A stretch of 64,000 nucleotides of DNA from Octopus vulgaris (lineage: Eukaryota): the NCBI GenBank assembly GCA_951406725.2, contig OX597835.1, forward strand, positions 46,872,001 to 46,936,000, written 5' to 3'. Below are positions 16,862-51,595 of the stretch, piece by piece. Under the pieces are notes generated by a model. It made no database searches, had not been told where the DNA came from, and was given only the letters and a program-made list of their open reading frames with translations. How positions within the stretch are numbered: position 1 is the stretch's first letter; the number at the start of each line of letters is the position of its first letter. Both the position numbers and the translations under genes were made by a program.

Positions 16862-16900
16862 TAGGCGCAAGAGTTGCAGTGTGGTAAGAAGCTTGCTTCC

Positions 16901-18905
16901 GGTTCCGGTTGTTCAGTTGTCTTCTCTGTGCCCTTGAAGTCGTCACGCTGGTGTGCAGCGGACGAAAGTTGAATTGAAAGAAGCTCTACCGTAAGGTAAG
17001 ACTTTTTGCTTTTTGAGTCCAGTAGGATTTGTTGCCTGTAGGTTTTATTATTTTTTTTTTGTACAAGCAAGGAGTCCTTACTGGATTCGGAGCTTTTTGT
17101 CTGCCGCGGTAGAGACGTGTGTGTTTTCTCACATAACTGAGAAATTGTGTGTGGAGTTTACTCCAAGTTGTTTTTGAAATTTTTTGTGCCGACGTGGATT
17201 TTACAAAGGATTTGCCAGAAGTACCTTTCGGCCTAAAATTATTTTCTTTGCCAACATTTGAACTCTTCTTCAAATCTATCATTTAATTTGGAACAAAAAC
17301 TTTATTGAACTGTTATTTTTATTTTTTCTTCCCTTCTGTTGCGTCTTTCTTTCTTATTTTGTGTATCTTTCTTCATTTTAAAACTCTATTGTGAACTGTA
17401 TTTGAACTTTTTTTTAAAATGGCAAAGGAATTATTAGTGTGGGAATTGACACCTCCCAAGACATGGCTCGAAGAGTTCGAAAGGAAGGCGGTGGTATTGA
17501 GGACTTATTCTAAGTCGCTCGATACCATAACCGTCTTCCCGAAAGCCACGATTCTGAAAGAGCTGGCAGAATACATGCCAGCTATTAAATTCATTTCACG
17601 GGGAGTCAAATATGCAACGGTCTGGTTGCTATTTGACTCCCCCCAAGAAGCTTGCGAGTTTGCAAGCCGGCCCCTCGAGGGCAATGGAATTATGTTCCTT
17701 CCCAGTTATTGTGGGAAGAAGTTGACGAGGGCTTGGGTCTGCGGTTTGCCACCCGGAATTGAGCCCGAGTGGATAGACGATTCTATCCACTGGGGTCTGA
17801 GTGGTAGCAGTACCAAGCTGCTCAACGTAAAAATTTTGCCTGCGGCTGATTGGGAGGGCTCAAAAGCTGTTTTGACCCTATGGACCCAATCAGCCGAAAG
17901 TCTGGTTTTCCCAGATTTTTTTAGGATGGCCGGGTCTAGGTATCCGGTGATGCTCGAGGGACGCTCCCCCAAGTGTCACCTGTGCCTAGAAACCGTCCAC
18001 ATCAAGAAAAACTGCCCCAAGAACCAAAATAGGGTCGTGGAGCAGTTAATAGAGGAATCACTCCCTGCTCCCTCAATGGAGGGAGAGAAGGAGGAGGATG
18101 ACGAGGAGGTTTCAACCTCCTCGAAAAAACGGAAGCGAAACGTGGGCAACAATGGTTGCCCACCGAAGGACCCGAGGGCTGTGGGACAAAAGGAGGACCT
18201 GCTGGAGACAGTAAAGGAACACCACCCTCCCGCGACCCAAGGGGAAAAGAAAAGAAAAAAGAAAAACGGGACATTGCCGGCAGGTTGTGACACGCTGCCG
18301 GCGTGTCCCGATGCTCCTTCGGCGGGTGTGCCGCTGGAAGAGGAATTTGTGGTCCTCTTCCACAAGGGAGGAACTCTGCAGAATGTAATCAGAAAATTTG
18401 AGAGGAAGGGCCGGTGGGAGGGGCTTCTGTCCTGCACGGAGGACTCTGAGTGGCCATCGCAGGTACTGCGGATGTCATATGGGAAACTGATCTGAGCAGG
18501 ATAATGAATTCTTTCCCGGCGGACTCCTTTAGATATATGACCAAGTGGTCCGGCTCAAAACTGACTAGGTGCTTCGAAGAAGCGAGGAGCCTGGTCGGAC
18601 AGAAAACTTGAAGTGTTGGACGTTTGGACTCAAAAAGAGTCTACAAAATCCAAAAAAAAAAGTGAGAGGATTATTGCCTCGTGTGTGAGTTTTTTTTTAA
18701 AACTATGTAAGAGGTTTATCGCCTCACTGTGTTTCTTTAAAAAAATGAAAAAAAGAACAATGTTTTAAAGAAGCGAAAGTCGGCGGGCGCTTTCGTCTTC
18801 TCCCATCCTTATCATCCTTGTATCATCATCATTCATCCCATTAATGTCTGTGTCCAGCCCGCAAGCTTCTCTGTATGCTGCCCTTGTGGCAAATTTAATG
18901 AAATA
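16901..18905 (+). mobile_element. ORF1-only (half-L1/HAL1-like) Tx1/L1-clade non-LTR element
   Basis: 15-bp TSD AAGAAGCTTGCTTCC (16886-16900, 18906-18920), ~520-bp 5' UTR, single ORF1, ~410-bp 3' UTR ending CTGTATGCTGCCCTTGTGGCAAATTTAATGAAATA. No endonuclease or RT coding sequence. Confidence 0.85.
17419..18495 (+). CDS. Tx1/L1-type ORF1 nucleic-acid-binding protein (358 aa) with CCHC zinc knuckle
   Basis: Uninterrupted ORF; RRM-like N-terminal half (ATVWLLF, RAWVCGLPPGI), YPVMLEGRSPK-CHLCLETVHIKKNC (CX2CX4HX4C), then a charged low-complexity tail. Confidence 0.85.
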   Translation: MAKELLVWELTPPKTWLEEFERKAVVLRTYSKSLDTITVFPKATILKELAEYMPAIKFISRGVKYATVWLLFDSPQEACEFASRPLEGNGIMFLPSYCGKKLTRAWVCGLPPGIEPEWIDDSIHWGLSGSSTKLLNVKILPAADWEGSKAVLTLWTQSAESLVFPDFFRMAGSRYPVMLEGRSPKCHLCLETVHIKKNCPKNQNRVVEQLIEESLPAPSMEGEKEEDDEEVSTSSKKRKRNVGNNGCPPKDPRAVGQKEDLLETVKEHHPPATQGEKKRKKKNGTLPAGCDTLPACPDAPSAGVPLEEEFVVLFHKGGTLQNVIRKFERKGRWEGLLSCTEDSEWPSQVLRMSYGKLI

Positions 18906-19075
18906 AAGAAGCTTGCTTCCCAACCATATGGTTCCGGGTTCAGTCTCCTGTGTGGCACTTTGGGCAGCTGTCTTCTACTATAGTCTCGGTTCAGCCAAAG
19001 CTTTTTGAATGGATTTGGTAGATGGAAACTGAAAGAATCCCATCGTATACAAATATATATTTATGTGTGTGTGTA

Positions 19076-19875: not shown

Positions 19876-20285
19876 GGCGCAGAAGTGGCAGTGTGGTAAG
19901 AAGCTTGCTTACCAACCACACGGTTACGGGTTCAGTCCTACTGTGTGGCACGTTGTGCAAGTGTCTGTTTCTATGGCCTCGGACCGACCCAAGCCTTGTG
20001 AATGGATTTGGTAGACGGAAACTGAAAGAAGCCTGTCGTATATATGTACATATATATATGTGTGTGTGTGTGGGGGGGGTTGTGTGTGTTTGTCCCCCCA
20101 ATATAGATTGACAATCCATGCTTGATTGTTTACATTCCCGTAACTTTGCGGTTCGACAAAAGAGACAGTTAGAATAAGTACTAGACTTACAAAGAATAAG
20201 TCCTGGGGTCGATTTGGTCGACTAAAGACGGTGCTCCAGCATGGCCGCAGTCAAATGACTGAAACAAGTAAAAGAATAAAAGAAT
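19876..20285 (+). mobile_element. SINE family A, full length
   Basis: Complete head (A-box-like TGGCAGTGTGG, B-box-like GGTTCAGTCC), body and AAAAGAATA tail. Confidence 0.85.
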
Positions 20286-23946: not shown

Positions 23947-24104
23947 CACACACACACACACACACCTTAGCACACACACACCTTAGCACACACACCTTCA
24001 CACACACACACACCTTCACACACACACACACACCTTCACACACAAACACACACACCTTCACACACACACACGCACTCACACACACACCTTCACGCACACA
24101 TACG

Positions 24105-24243
24105 ACGAGCTTCTTTCAGTTTCCGTCTCCCAGATTCACTCACTAAGTTTTGCTTGACCCCTGGCTACAGAAGACACTTGTCTTAAGTGGTAGTCGGTGG
24201 GATTGAACCCGGAACCAGGTTTTACGGAGCATCTTAACTACAC
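24105..24243 (-). mobile_element. SINE family A head fragment
   Basis: GCTTCTTTCAGTTTCCGTCT...GGATTGAACCCGGAACC, reverse orientation. Confidence 0.6.
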
Positions 24244-28004: not shown

Positions 28005-28045
<41 letters not shown>

Positions 28046-28210
28046 TATATACATATATACGACAGGCTTCTTTCAGTTTCCGTCTACCAAATCCACTCAC
28101 AAGGCATTGGTCGGTCCGGGGCTATAGCAGAAGACACTTGCCCAAGATGCCACGCAGAGGGACTGAACCCGAAACCATGTGGTTGGTTAGCAAGCTACTT
28201 ACCACACAGC
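27799..28210 (-). mobile_element. SINE family A, full length, low divergence
   Basis: Complete reverse-orientation consensus. Confidence 0.9.
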
Positions 28211-28282: not shown

Positions 28283-29010
28283 CCGTGGCTGTGTGGTAAG
28301 AAGCTTATTTCCCAACCACATGGTTCTGAGTTCAGTCCCACCGCGTGGAACGTTGGGCACGTGTCTCCTATCATAACCTTGGGCCAACCAAAGCCTTGTG
28401 AGTAGATTTGGTAGAAAGAACTGAAAGAAGTCCATTCTATACATTAGGGGCAGATGTGGGTGCGTGCGTGGTAAGAAGCTTGCTTCATAACCACATGGTT
28501 TCGGGTTCAGTCACACTGCGTGGCACCTTGAGCAAGTGTCTTCTACTATAACCTCGGGTCGATCAAAGCCTCAAGAGCGTATTTAGGAAACGGAAACTGA
28601 AAGAAGCCTGTCGTATGGGTGGTTTTACACCTTTTTTTTTATCAAATGAGAGAATTTTCTCCACGGTGACTGCAGTGAGTTTGCCTTGGGCAATTGTAAT
28701 ACGCCATAAACATATTTTAACTAACCTAAAATGTGTGTGTGTGTTTTTGTGTGTGTGTTTATGTGTGGTTGTGTGTGTGTTTGTGTGTTTTAATGTGTGT
28801 GTATATGTGTTTGTGTTTGTCCCCACCATCGCTTGACAACCCGTGTTGATGTGTTTACGTCCTCGTGACTAACCGGTCCAGCAAAAGCGACCGATAGAAT
28901 AAGTCCCAGCCTTAACAGAAAATTAATACTAGGGTCGATTCAAGCGAATAAAATTCTTTTAAGTCGGTGCCCCAGCATGGCCATAGTCTAATAATCAAAG
29001 GTAAAAGAAT
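28283..29010 (+). mobile_element. SINE family A with duplicated head (28283-28440, 28455-28617), an internal MITE fragment and tail (28795-29010)
   Basis: Two successive GGTAAGAAGCTT...GAAAGAAG heads, then the 1811-type fragment, then the family A tail. Confidence 0.7.
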
Positions 29011-30224: not shown

Positions 30225-30687
30225 TTTATTCTTTTATTCTTTCCGTTGTTTCGGTCATTTTGACTGCGGCCATGCTGGAGCATCGCCTTTAGTCGAACAA
30301 ATCGACCACAGAACTTATTCTTTGCAAGCCCAGTACTTATTCTATCGGTCTCTTTTGCAGAACCGGTAAGTTACGGGGACGTGAACACACCAGCATCGGT
30401 TGTCAAGCAGTGATGGGGTAACAAACACAGACACACAAATACATACATATACATGTATACATATACATTCATACACACATACATACGCGCGCGCGCACAA
30501 ACACACAAACACAGACAAACATACACATATATGACAGGTTTCTTTCAGTTTCCGTCTACCGAAGTCCACCCACAAGACTTTGGTCGACCCGAGGCTATAG
30601 TGAAAGACACTTGCCGAAGGTGCCAGGCAGTGGAACTGAACCTGGAACCATGTGGTTAGGAAGTAATCTTCATACTACACAGCCACT
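30225..30687 (-). mobile_element. SINE family A, full length
   Basis: Reverse-orientation consensus from the tail to the ACACAGCCAC head. Confidence 0.85.
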
Positions 30688-38359: not shown

Positions 38360-38672
38360 TTCTATTCTTTTATTTATTTCAGTCATTTTACTGCGGCCAT
38401 GCTGAAGCACCGCCTTTAATCGAACAAATCGACCCTAGGACTTATTCTTTGTAGGCCTAAGTTACAGGAACGTTAACACACCACCATCGTTTGTCATGCG
38501 ATGGTGGGGGGGGGACAAACAGATACACAAACACACACACACACATATATATATATACGACGGGCTTCTTTCAGTTTCCGTCTACCAGATCCACTCACAA
38601 GGCTTTGGTCGGCCCGAGGCTATAGCTGAAGGCACTTGCCCAAGATGCCACGAAGTGTGACTGAACCCAGAA
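38355..38672 (-). mobile_element. SINE family A (internally shortened)
   Basis: Reverse-orientation tail, body and partial head. Confidence 0.75.
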
Positions 38673-38759
38673 TCATAATGAAGCTCAGTTTCATACACTG
38701 ACGGGGGAGATAACCACCCCCGTGATTCCGTGTGACTAAGAGAATTTAACTCTTATTGC

Positions 38760-38821: not shown

Positions 38822-41270
38822 TGTTTCTTTATTAGCCACACAGGGCTGCACACAGATAGAACAAATTACAAGGTAGAGCTTTTCTTTTGAAGGTAAAAAA
38901 AAAAAATAAAAATAAAAATAAAATAAAATAAAATAAAAAAAAAAATAAAAAAGGGGGGGTCGATCAAAAGGGATCGTAAAAGGAGAGAAAGAGGACAAAA
39001 AAGGGGGGGTAAAAAAAAGGGGGAGAGGAAAAAAATTGATCAATAGGGATCGTTATCACAGAAATGTCAATATGAAGTGTAAAGGGGAGGACAGGTGAGG
39101 TTTACCCGTGGAAAGAAAAGCCTACGGAAAAGACCACGGTAACCTCGGTCAATGAAGTCACATGTTATATTTCTTTTTTCTTTTTTTTTTTTGCAAATAA
39201 GCAACTCTCTGTATTAATTTTTACGGTTCATAGAATCATAGTCAAGGTGGCTTCGTCATTCATACGTGCCATCCTTGCTACATTCACCCATCTTTTTTTA
39301 AAACATTCACTAGACAAAACTTGCCTTTCTACACTCACTTTTTTCTTCAAGTGATACTTGAAGAAGTTGATGAGAGATTGACCAGAGAGGAAAGTGTTTG
39401 TCTCTAATCCTTTCAGGCGCGTCCACCAGATACATTCTTTCGCCATAGCCACAAGTATGATAAAATTAGCTCTTCCTTCCCGTTTGAAGGAAGGAGGCGT
39501 GACGATATTAACGATAGACTCGGCTGATAAACCGCCACGTCCCACACGTGACAGCAGTCGTTCGACATAAGCCCACAGGTGGGAAATTGCTGGACACTGC
39601 ACGATTGCGTGCAGAGCGGTTTCGTCGCTCTGCCCGCATCTCGGGCAGGTCGGCCCCGTGTTTCTCGAGCCATGCCTATAGAGCTTATCCCGAACGGGTA
39701 GCGCTTCTCGGTAGCACCGCCAGGCCAGGGATCTCTGGAAGTTGTCCATAGGTCCCGGGCCGAAAGTCGTTTGAAACAGGCGGGTCAGGTATTTCTCGTC
39801 GACGCCCAGGTTTGCCCCGAGCTCGTCGTCGTACCTCCCCTCCACTAATCCCCTATAGAATGCTTTGGTTGTGTTGAAGTCACTCAAGGTCGACCCGGGA
39901 CGGCAGAGTTGCTTGAGAGCAACGCGACACTCGCGGTGCCATTCGCCCTTCCTCGGCCTCTTTTTGATCCACGACTGTAGTTCGGTCATGGAGACGAGTT
40001 GCGGGAATGCGTGCCTCACAAACGGCGACCACACCTGTTCACCGTCGTCTACATAGAGCCGGAGATGTCGCAGTCTCAGCGCGTGTCTGCGCATCATCAA
40101 CCACGGCATGCCCAGCCCTCCTTTTAACGGGTGTTGACAGCAAATGGATCGCCTGACCATCGGGACGCATCCTTTCCACAAGAAGCGGAAGAGGATGCGT
40201 TCTAGTTTGGTGATGGTAGGGTCGGGACAAGGTACGACGGTCAGGCGGTAGTAGATGATGGACGCGATGTACGCGTTCACCACCTCCGCCCGACCTTTTA
40301 GGGACAGTTTCCTCTCGGCCCATTGCTGGGCGAGAGTGACCACCCTACTCGTTTTCTTGTTCCAGTTCTTCTCCATTTGGAGGTCCGGACCGAACCAGAC
40401 CCCGAGCAACTCAACCGGGCCGTCTGTCCAGCGTCCCACGACGGAGGTACTGGTGGACGGCATGGGCTTGCTTCTCCAGGTGCCGAGCCGCAAGCCCACT
40501 GACTTTTCCCGGTTGATTTTTGCTTCTGTCACCGCTTCGTAGTCTTTCAGTGTCTCGCCGACCCGCTCGATGTGCTCGTGGCTTGACACTATGACGGTGA
40601 CGTCGTCCGCGTATGCAGACACGCTCGTCCCGCATCCCAATTCTCGCGGGATGCCCCTTAGAGTCGCCAGCTTCCGCAGTAGTGGCTCAAGAGTCAATAC
40701 GTATAGAAGCGCCGAGAGGGGGCATCCCTGACGGACCGAACGTGCAATGTCGAAAGGTCTCGATAGATGTCCATTTACGCGAATTACCGAACGGATGCCT
40801 CTGTACAAGGCAGCTATCCAGCCGCGGAAGACGGGACCGAAACCAGCCGCTCTCAGGACTGCCTCCAAGTATCGATGGTCTACCCTATCAAAGGCTTTCG
40901 ATTGATCCAAGTTGATCAGGGTCCCACCCATGCCAGGTTCGTTAACTACCCTGTCTATGATGTAGCGCATCAGATGGAGGTTGTCATGGATGCTCCGGCC
41001 CGGCACGGCGCACGTTTGTACGTTGTCGACCAGTTTCTCGATGACAAGCGCCAACCTCTTGGCTAACACCTTTGTCAAAATTTTCAGGTCTGCATTGAGC
41101 AGTGTGATTGGTCTAAAGTTATCTATAATGTTTCCCTTGTTTAGATCTTTCTTCAGCAGAGTTACAGCTCCTCGACTCACAAAACCGGGTATGCTCCCGT
41201 TTTGCTGCCAGTTGCAGTATACCGCTGCCAAGACGTCTCCAAACAAGTCTGGCATACAATTGTAAAACTC
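38821..41270 (-). mobile_element. 5'-truncated Tx1/L1-clade non-LTR retrotransposon inserted in (GATA)n
   Basis: Flanked by (GATA)n at 38759-38821 and 41271-41429. The 3' UTR ends TCTGTGTGCAGCCCTGTGTGGCTAATAAAGAAACAT. Confidence 0.9.
39228..41270 (-). CDS. Tx1/L1-type ORF2 (RT domain + C-terminal zinc-binding domain), 5'-truncated, uninterrupted
   Basis: [66 protein letters not shown]; no endonuclease domain. The ORF-track N-terminus (LSIY repeats) is microsatellite. Confidence 0.93.
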
Positions 41271-42181: not shown

Positions 42182-42270
<89 letters not shown>

Positions 42271-42437
42271 TACGACGGCCTTCTTTCAGTTTCCGTCAAC
42301 CAAAATCCACTCACAAGGCTTTGGTCGGCCCGAGGCTATAGTAGATGACACTTGCCCAAGGTGCCACGCAGTGGGACTGAACCCGGAACCATGTGGTTGG
42401 TAAGCAAGCTACTTACCACACATCCACTCCTGCGCCT
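41976..42437 (-). mobile_element. SINE family A, full length, low divergence
   Basis: Complete reverse consensus ending CCACTCCTGCGCC. Confidence 0.9.
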
Positions 42438-46236: not shown

Positions 46237-46624
46237 CGAAGCCTGTCGTATGTATGTATATATATATATATATGTATGTATGTGTGTGTGTTTGTGTGTC
46301 TGTGTTTGTCCCCCTAGCATTGCTTGACAACCGATGCTGGTGTGTTTACGCCCCCGTCACTTAGCGGTTCGGCAAAAATAGACCGATAGAATAAGTACTG
46401 GGCTTACAAAGAATAAGTCCCGGGGTCGATTTGCTCGACTAAAGGCGGTGCTCCAGCATGGCCGCAGTCAAATGACTGAAACAAGTAAAAGTAAAAGTAA
46501 AAGTAATATATACATATATATGACGGGCTTCTTTCAGTTTCCATCTACCAAATCCACTCACAAGGCTTTGGTCGGCCCGAGGCTACAGTAGAAGACACTT
46601 GCCCAAGGTGCCACGCAGTGGGAA
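46237..46624. mobile_element. SINE family A pieces: 3' part (+, 46237-46505) and head part (-, 46521-46624)
   Basis: Near-consensus sequence in both pieces. Confidence 0.8.
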
Positions 46625-51400: not shown

Positions 51401-51449
51401 TCTTAAAAATATATATATATATGTGGAGTGGGGTGCGAGCGCTGGTCTT

Positions 51450-51595
51450 CTCTCACCTTCTGTCTACCAAATCCATTCACAAGGCATTGGTCGGCTCGAA
51501 GCTATACCAGAATACACTGTCAAAGATGCTACACAGTGGAACTGAACCCGGAACCATGTAGCTGGGATGCAAACTTCTTACCACACAGCCAAGCC
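51450..51595 (-). mobile_element. SINE family A head fragment
   Basis: CCTTCTGTCTACCAAATCCATTCACAAGGC...ACTGAACCCGGAACCATGT...TTACCACACAGCC. Confidence 0.7.

Follow-up and report, generated by a model that had tools for sequence, protein, structure and literature searches.

HAL1 of mammals is a non-autonomous derivative of long interspersed elements (LINEs) that has a first open reading frame (ORF1) and no ORF2, and that amplifies with the ORF2 protein (ORF2p) of a partner. In this work we describe elements of Octopus vulgaris that also have ORF1 and no ORF2, starting from an insertion in a 64-kb window of this genome (the window is the whole stretch that was analysed, 64,000 nucleotides, positions 46,872,001 to 46,936,000 of contig OX597835.1 in assembly GCA_951406725.2; coordinates given without a locus name refer to it). 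The insert, 2,005 bp long at positions 16901-18905 (+), interrupts a tRNA-like short interspersed element (SINE) of the commonest type in this genome and contains a single ORF, of the ORF1 type. We call family A the non-autonomous retrotransposons of O. vulgaris, of the kind devoid of long terminal repeats (non-LTR), to which this insert belongs.

Dada DNA transposons encode a DDE transposase, have terminal inverted repeats and make short (6-7 bp) duplications. Their targets are tRNA and snRNA genes, and within tRNA-like sequences the insertion point is fixed (PMC3706591). In Drosophila, HeT-A and ORF1-only telomeric elements of the Jockey clade are persistent ORF1 (gag)-only lineages that depend on the ORF2 of elements resident in the same specialised niche and form head-to-tail arrays (bioRxiv 10.1101/2025.06.09.658640). 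The target-specific LINEs of the Tx1 clade and their dependants include Tx1L in Tx1D, Tx1-Mar and SINEU-3 in Mariner-N4_AMi, Keno, Kibi/Koshi and Dewa (PMC4494074, PMC3706591); elements of this clade have transposons or small-RNA-related sequences as targets, produce duplications of about 16 bp, occur as tandem copies that sandwich one duplication and are accompanied by non-autonomous riders with the same target (PMC4494074; PMC3706591). L1-Tx1 families have been annotated, in RepeatMasker style, as recently active in O. vulgaris (PMC13282606). For R1/R2, co-transcription of the upstream target and homology-assisted 5′ joining have been proposed (cited in PMC4494074).

Results

Family A has ORF1 and no ORF2

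Sequences related to the insert were searched for in the O. vulgaris genome (2.8 Gb in 227 contigs, labelled G000; L-numbers below are loci). The DNA search, with 3,014 first-look candidates, yielded at least 40 copies that are nearly full-length and 79-87% identical to the insert, and the protein search yielded 12,778 candidates; all 114 scored protein matches are strong, they group at about 82%, 63-70% and 60-61% amino acid (aa) identity, and many of them have intact frames of 392-420 aa. We inspected 48 distinct copies, which come from at least three deeply diverged subfamilies. The elements are 2.0-2.2 kb long across the family, ORF2 is absent from 48/48 copies, and no similarity to an endonuclease (EN) or a reverse transcriptase (RT) is present within 1.5 kb of any of them. 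The initial annotation of the window had left it to other copies to decide whether the lack of ORF2 is shared; since the same layout, from ORF1 to the 3′ untranslated region (UTR), is found in 48 of the 48, having ORF1 alone characterises the family as a whole.

The comparison of nonsynonymous and synonymous substitution rates (dN/dS), also suggested in the initial annotation, indicates purifying selection on the ORF: in pairwise comparisons of subfamilies, dN/dS ranges from 0.22 to 0.33 with dS of 0.4-1.0, and is lowest, about 0.2, in the RRM domain. The protein is therefore used, and the gene has been needed throughout the history of the family. In the youngest subfamily seen (L064/L065), two copies are 98.75% identical over 2.2 kb and the ORF is of 414 aa. 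Our searches found no element that combines an ORF2 with a close relative of this ORF1, and the ORF1-only state is therefore ancient; the description of the insert as a 'half-L1' produced by deletion of ORF2 is not demonstrated. A set of copies first considered as a 'family C' (5′ end GCGCATGYGT) proved to be another subfamily of family A. Local clusters of six and four exact family A 3′ junctions were observed at G000 C13:23.04-23.08 Mb and C14:74.03-74.31 Mb, respectively, and are arrays or segmental duplications.

The SINE head is the target of the whole family

The position of the window insert within a SINE head is not a chance landing site, as the SINE head is the specific target of the entire family. 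In 40 of the 48 copies the element begins right next to the SINE head, at ...GGTAAG[A/T]AGCTTGCT...; three copies start directly after another family member in tandem, and five are 5′-truncated or have an unclear 5′ end. On the other side, all copies with a readable 3′ end (45/45) are followed by the repeat AAG[A/T]AGCTTGCT, beyond which the sequence runs on into the SINE tail (37/45) or into the 5′ end of another, tandem element (6/45), or is rearranged (2/45). Subfamilies hosted by the AAGTAG..TAACC variant of the SINE have this variant in both copies of the repeat, the subfamily of the window insert has the AAGAAG..TTCC variant in both, and each of these two SINE variants also occurs uninterrupted. 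Genome-wide, the pattern N17-AAAG[A/T]AGCTTGCT[A/T][A/C]CCA has 1,813 exact matches, compared with 0-1 in a reversed control; about 78% of the listed matches are element ends, or about 1,400 exact 3′ junctions in the genome, and a stricter 3′-junction pattern has 118 matches compared with 0 in the control. A relative in O. sinensis uses the same position of the SINE.

Other sequences are associated with this SINE. About 10% of the occupied SINE sites (C1 junction list) end with ..GCCAAT..AATAAAAG, as does the L063-type LINE described below, rather than with ..GGCAAAT..GAAATAAAG; the GCCAAT-ending sites are all in the AAGAAG..TTCC variant, and they may represent yet another family at the SINE site. 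In L042, L044, L052, L058 and L064 (e.g. L064 3420-3625), a conserved second module of about 200 bp, GTTTGTCCCCCTAGCATTGCTTGACAACCGATGCTGG...CAAGTAAAAGAG, follows the (TA)n tail of the AAGTAG-variant SINE, as if both were parts of a longer composite repeat. At L064 3669-3745, beside the SINE module, there is a different tRNA-like sequence, GGCGCGTGGCTCAGTGGTTAGAGCATTCGGCTCACG..., which is another tRNA-derived repeat or a tRNA gene.

Junctions point to target-primed reverse transcription

The 5′-truncated copies (L015, L028, L029 and L034) are informative on the mode of insertion. L028 has a canonical 3′ junction and is flanked by a duplication of about 95 bp of a SINE copy that carries peculiar substitutions, compared with 15-16 bp for full-length copies. 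This element therefore inserted into a pre-existing SINE, and the SINE pieces do not travel with the element. The 3′ ends are identical in 45/45 copies, and the combination of a fixed 3′ junction and first-strand cut, GGT^AAG, on the 5′ side of the anticodon stem with a variable cut of the second strand is a signature of target-primed reverse transcription. Family A thus has the features of a non-LTR element inserted in this way, namely a fixed 3′ junction, variable 5′ truncation and duplications of variable length, with neither LTRs nor terminal inverted repeats. Head-to-tail arrays in which a single repeat separates neighbours contain members of different subfamilies and families, and are explained by regeneration of the target at each insertion.

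Two structures are conserved near the 3′ end. The first is a 3′-UTR hairpin, AAGAAGCGAAAG-loop-CUUUCGUCUUCUC (about 18768-18802, +, in the window copy), in which RNAalifold finds 14 pairs on 20 copies from three subfamilies; one pair changes from G-C to A-U (8 vs 6 distinct rows), and the other pairs are invariant or wobble. The second is a terminal motif (18877-18907, +; cross-subfamily alignment) composed of the hairpin TGCC-CTTGT-GGCA, an A/T spacer and AATAAA, the last two bases of AATAAA being the first two bases of the target. The terminal motif, TGCC..GGCA plus AATAAA, is kept in all family A subfamilies and in a second family, family B, described below.

In some lineages the left repeat is lineage-specific and does not duplicate the right one. 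The left repeat is ..TTTCTCACC in each of L047, L050 and L051, and in L065 the left repeat is that of its sister L064 while the right repeat is that of its own target, so that the '15-bp target-site duplication' is not always a pure duplication. By analogy with R1/R2, such inherited left repeats fit transcripts that start in the upstream SINE head, followed by homology-assisted joining of the 5′ end. However, the 12-20 nucleotides (nt) just inside the left repeat are short palindromes, which are mosaic among the same close relatives (L047/L050/L051, L064/L065).

The family A protein is an ORF1p with two RRMs and a CCHC knuckle

Residues 1-183 of the window ORF form two tandem RRM-like domains; they are followed by a CCHC knuckle, a K/E-rich linker (KRKR, KKRKKKNG) and the start of a conserved C-terminal domain. 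AlphaFold2 modelled residues 1-215 with a predicted local distance difference test (pLDDT) score of 87 on a 47-sequence alignment, and a Foldseek search gave as best matches the tandem-RRM proteins IMP3 RRM12, UP1, Hrp1, Npl3 and SFPQ/NONO, all with probability 1.0. A model of the full ORF with 15 paralogues (pLDDT 30) was unusable. In sequence-based domain searches, Pfam gave no match on the window ORF, weak zf-CCHC matches on paralogues and significant zf-CCHC matches on distant homologues, and a sequence-profile search of the PDB returned weak CCHC matches only.

Among 1.8 billion representative proteins, phmmer found 41 relatives, ten of which were traced and proved to be either nameless or proteins of Octopus or Argonauta, and a word-indexed protein search had one O. 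sinensis protein as its sole match. In public annotation, relatives are labelled 'uncharacterized protein' or 'EPM2A-interacting 1-like'. A distant homologue lies directly upstream of an ORF2 with Exo_endo_phos and RVT_1 domains on an independent contig (L061), and the family A ORF is 26% identical (BLASTP, E = 1e-23), across the N-terminal domain and the knuckle, to the ORF1 of the O. vulgaris L063-type LINE, whose ORF2 has Exo_endo_phos, RVT_1 and zf-RVT domains. This agrees with the L1/Tx1-type source of the ORF proposed in the initial annotation. Homology to ORF1s linked to an ORF2, together with the tandem RRM and CCHC fold, makes the family A protein a LINE ORF1p of the RRM+CCHC kind.

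The window copy and its SINE host

Two perfect copies of the 15-mer AAGAAGCTTGCTTCC, at 16886-16900 and 18906-18920 (+; direct-repeat comparison), flank the insert. The initial annotation had read them as target-site duplications bracketing a 2,005-bp insert that splits a SINE head, and joining the flanks indeed rebuilds a full SINE: without the insert, they form a complete element of about 180 bp that aligns end to end with uninterrupted window copies (e.g. 19876-20053 and 42436-42258). The 5′ part of the interrupted SINE, at 16864-16900 (+; flank joining, ARAGORN), runs from the acceptor and D arm through the anticodon stem, and the 3′ part, at 18921-19060 (+; flank joining), comprises the variable arm, the B-box region GGTTCCGGGTTCAGTC, the body and the tail. 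ARAGORN folds the heads of the rebuilt and uninterrupted copies as tRNA-Ser(GCT)-like structures in which the duplicated 15-16 bp are the anticodon stem-loop. Eleven more tRNA-Ser(GCT)-like copies of the SINE lie within the 64-kb window, at 2391-2548, 19876-20053, 24100-24217, 28045-28210, 28285-28443, 28468-28616, 30528-30687, 38545-38677, 42258-42436, 46506-46618 and 51440-51589. Both target variants, AAGAAGCTTGCTT[A/C]CC and AAGTAGCTTGCT[A/T]ACC, are found uninterrupted among the window SINEs, which serve as paralogous 'empty sites'.

The insert starts with a 5′ UTR of 518 nt (16901-17418, +; alignment of 22 copies) and ends with a 3′ UTR of 410 nt (18496-18905, +; ORF end to right repeat), so that the long 5′ UTR, the 3′ UTR of about 410 bp and the structured 3′ end noted initially, with a hairpin kept across subfamilies, all stand. 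Between them lies the sole ORF of the insert (17419-18495, +; 358 aa and a stop), with the CCHC zinc knuckle CHLCLETVHIKKNC at aa 186-199 (17974-18015, +; motif C186-X2-C-X4-H-X4-C199). This ORF had been described as intact. It has no internal stop and does encode the knuckle, but DNA and protein alignments reveal a 1-nt deletion relative to the family at about 18464/18465 (+; CAGGT-ACTGCGG vs CAGGTGGCTGCGG), and the resulting frameshift replaces the last ~48 residues of the 392-414-aa ORF. The initial statement that the insert contains neither EN nor RT holds: tblastn with a Tx1-type ORF2 gave no match in it. A repeat search found no terminal inverted repeats and no LTRs at the ends of the insert, only the 15-bp direct repeat, and there is no poly(A) at its 3′ end. 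Nor does the insert have the features of a SINE, being 2 kb long and encoding a protein under selection, in contrast with a short non-coding unit of RNA polymerase III (Pol III).

In the alignment of 22 copies, the 5′ UTR of the window sub-subfamily begins with GGTTCCGG... and is about 55 nt shorter than that of the commoner GGTTGAAC... type. The resemblance of the first 13 nt of the window copy to the SINE B-box region was discarded, as the usual 5′ end seems here to have been altered by a deletion, and so was a 13-nt complementarity between the 5′ and 3′ UTRs (17009/18625), which is not kept in other copies. The sub-subfamily is old, since the nearest copy differs by 9.9% and most ORFs of the group are decayed; with the calibration of PMC13282606 this divergence would correspond, very roughly, to 10-20 million years. 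The window insert is an old, and probably dead, member of a large non-autonomous family.

Candidate enzyme donors

Downstream of the family A copies in L047, L056 and L011, a different element, which we call family B, starts with TCACTGAC... right after the shared repeat (family B pieces at L047 1-1046 (-), L056 3000-4041 (+) and L011 835-1191 (-)). Its ORF1, of about 488 aa and frameshifted in L047, is of the same type as that of family A and ~22-28% identical to it; it has 13,390 first-look matches in the genome and no close relative among public proteins. In 62 of the 84 listed family B ORF1 matches, the exact 30-mer GGCAAATTATATGAAATAAAG|TAGCTTGCT is present on the same strand, at a median of 4,657 nt downstream of codon 99, and 57 of these 62 distances fall within 4,588-4,685 nt. 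This constancy indicates that family B is a uniform element of about 5.36 kb, which occupies the site of family A and ends with the same 3′ sequence. The search for an autonomous element with the 3′ end of the insert, recommended in the initial annotation, has thus led to a candidate that shares its terminal 30 nt and its target; family B is known from these and from its ORF1, with ~3.1 kb beyond ORF1 in which a putative ORF2 would lie. We consider family B the best candidate for the autonomous partner, and its role as a donor is deduced from these shared features.

An abundant and intact Tx1-type LINE, the L063 type (G000:C4:93805500-93813500; also C50, C47), encodes a 546-aa ORF1 and a 1,144-aa ORF2 and forms head-to-tail arrays with a 5.87-kb period. 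It ends with ...CCCTTGTGGCCAATAAAAAG followed by (ATT)n both in O. vulgaris and in O. sinensis (L062 13322-13400), and looks microsatellite-specific; its terminal motif, CCCTTGTGGCCAATAAAA, is similar to that of family A. The window itself contains a 5′-truncated ORF2 of a Tx1-type LINE, at 39258-41270 (-), 20 kb from the insert, with 73% aa identity to residues 471-1136 of the L063 ORF2. Other ORF2 classes (open frames of 1,028-1,138 aa) are likewise arranged in tandem, repeating every 5.28 kb or so, at G000 C7:109.68 Mb, C6:114.84 Mb and C30:10.44 Mb, and several target-specific LINE families seem to coexist in the genome. Two other potential sources of enzymes were set aside: contigs from ENA with related ORF2s belong to another organism, which lacks this SINE, and an ORF2 fragment of O. 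sinensis, in locus L066, has no connection with the SINE site. The flanks of all family A loci are devoid of EN and RT.

Discussion

We propose that family A consists of ORF1-only non-LTR retrotransposons that target a SINE head and use the enzymes of Tx1-type LINEs in trans, a reading to which we give a probability of about 0.8. Family A inserts into the tRNA-Ser(GCT)-like SINE head at a single position, by target-primed reverse transcription, and re-use of the regenerated target produces the head-to-tail arrays. According to our model, EN and RT would be supplied by an autonomous LINE of the Tx1 type that has this target specificity too, the enzyme of which would recognise the shared 3′ end, with its conserved hairpin, TGCC..GGCA hairpin and AAUAAA, while the RNA of family A would presumably be coated in cis by its own ORF1p. 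The initial annotation had similarly supposed that the element supplies ORF1p and borrows ORF2p from an autonomous Tx1 partner; the first half of this proposal is borne out by the existence of an ORF1-only family with a conserved ORF1, and the identity of the partner remains a deduction.

Several observations weigh against our model. No RT with the SINE as target was seen, the ~3.1 kb of family B in which it might lie being unread, and the top 105 RT and top 150 EN matches in the genome all fall outside family B intervals. The sole autonomous relative that could be read, the L063 type, targets (ATT)n and not the SINE. The family A ORF1 is just 22-28% identical to any ORF1 found adjoining an ORF2, so that a simple deletion of ORF2 is not demonstrated, and the left repeat is, in some lineages, not a copy of the right one. 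Finally, the elements are placed in Tx1 by their domains, their target-specific behaviour, the 16-bp duplications and the annotation in PMC13282606, not by an RT phylogeny; the ORF2-bearing relatives have APE, RVT_1 and zf-RVT domains, and their few labelled matches are unnamed reverse transcriptases of Xenopus, about 31% identical.

In an alternative reading, targeting would be carried by the ORF1-only element itself, through SINE sequences co-transcribed at the ends of its RNA or through an ORF1p tether, with any resident Tx1-type ORF2p, for example that of the (ATT)n-specific L063 type, supplying the enzymes. Inheritance of the left repeat within lineages (L047/L050/L051, L065) suggests that the upstream SINE head is where transcription begins, and since AATAAA is completed by target bases the transcripts probably end in the right repeat; the L063-type LINE has the common terminal motif CCCTTGTGGC[A/C]AAT..AATAAA, each subfamily is matched to a SINE variant, and no RT was seen at the SINE site. 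If this were true, the site specificity of family A would perpetuate itself, guided by RNA or by ORF1p, much as HeT-A steers TART/TAHRE at the telomeres of Drosophila. We nevertheless regard it as unlikely, because family B, with the same target, the same 3′ end and a LINE-like length, is a simpler donor, because the right-hand repeat of L028 is the target's own variant and was not borne by the RNA, and because in the target-specific LINEs that have been studied it is the endonuclease that sets the site (PMC4494074). A related idea is that the SINE head, the element body and the SINE tail constitute one composite unit, amplified by SINE-type retroposition or segmental duplication, in which the 15-bp repeat is the relic of a single ancestral insertion. 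Nearly all copies do have the same SINE pieces on both sides, and some 5′-truncated ones (L015, L029) retain the tail without the head. This is very improbable, however, given that L028 duplicates ~95 bp of its own peculiar SINE copy, that both copies of the repeat change together between SINE variants, that the SINE tails resemble one another much more closely than do the element bodies next to them, that the heads upstream of near-identical elements differ, that tandem arrays with a single repeat mix subfamilies and families, and that the many T runs in the body would stop Pol III read-through.

The two remaining possibilities question the nature of the family rather than its targeting. A host multigene family, or a domesticated gene for a CCHC RNA-binding protein, would account for the purifying selection on the ORF and for the public names of its relatives. 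It is hard to reconcile with thousands of dispersed intronless copies with defined ends, with target duplications, 5′ truncations and tandem arrays, with the mostly decayed ORFs of the older subfamilies and with the homology to LINE ORF1, and we give it hardly any credit. As for a one-off internal deletion in an autonomous LINE, the relatives of which would all have kept ORF2, an outcome that the initial annotation had named as its own refutation, it is refuted by the ORF1-only layout, at 2.0-2.2 kb, of all 48 copies, whose subfamilies are separated by dS values of up to about 1.

Family A joins ORF1-only 'half-LINEs' with Tx1-style target-specific retrotransposition, two properties that we did not find described together. 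The persistence of the ORF1-only state to dS of about 1 under purifying selection means that ORF1p is important in cis, even when all other functions are borrowed. Within the tRNA-like part of the SINE, the anticodon arm serves as a safe-harbour target common to several element families: several LINE-like lineages, among them at least three deeply diverged ORF1-only subfamilies, occupy this single niche, the anticodon arm of a tRNA-Ser-derived SINE, which explains nested and tandem repeats in a genome made up of SINEs for about 12%. The pairing of families A and B offers a testable system to study how a LINE enzyme chooses its RNA (the 3′ hairpins) and its DNA (the 16-bp site), and thousands of Octopus 'uncharacterized CCHC proteins' could be reassigned to family A. 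In the literature, which we covered incompletely and without Repbase, we found no description of an ORF1-encoding rider in a target-specific system, nor of a SINE anticodon arm as a target.

Compared with the systems described so far, family A has a HAL1-like architecture, with homology to LINE ORF1 and a family-wide absence of ORF2, without being HAL1 proper. Both have an ORF1, lack ORF2 and have amplified as families. HAL1, however, derives recognisably and repeatedly from L1, encodes an ORF1 protein of the coiled coil-RRM-C-terminal domain type, ends with a poly(A) tail and is not site-specific, whereas family A encodes a 2xRRM+CCHC ORF1, lacks poly(A), is strictly site-specific and has no close ORF2-bearing parent that we could find. 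The likeness is even greater with elements of the HeT-A type, ORF1-only lineages that also persist, diversify, occupy a specialised niche and form arrays; these belong to the Jockey clade, attach to chromosome ends without an endonuclease-type duplication and occupy telomeres, where HeT-A has a host function. R1/R2 belong to other clades and have ribosomal DNA as a target; judging from the junctions, the precise full-length 5′ ends and lineage-specific left repeats of family A are consistent with the presence of the upstream target in transcripts, as in the R1/R2 model. Family A differs from Dada in having no DDE transposase, no terminal inverted repeats and no 6-7 bp duplications. With the LINEs of the Tx1 clade it shares target specificity, duplications of about 16 bp and tandem sandwiches; its target, the anticodon arm of a tRNA-derived SINE head, is one that we did not find described, and, while the known riders of Tx1 elements (SINEU) are non-coding, the family A rider encodes and conserves an ORF1 of its own.

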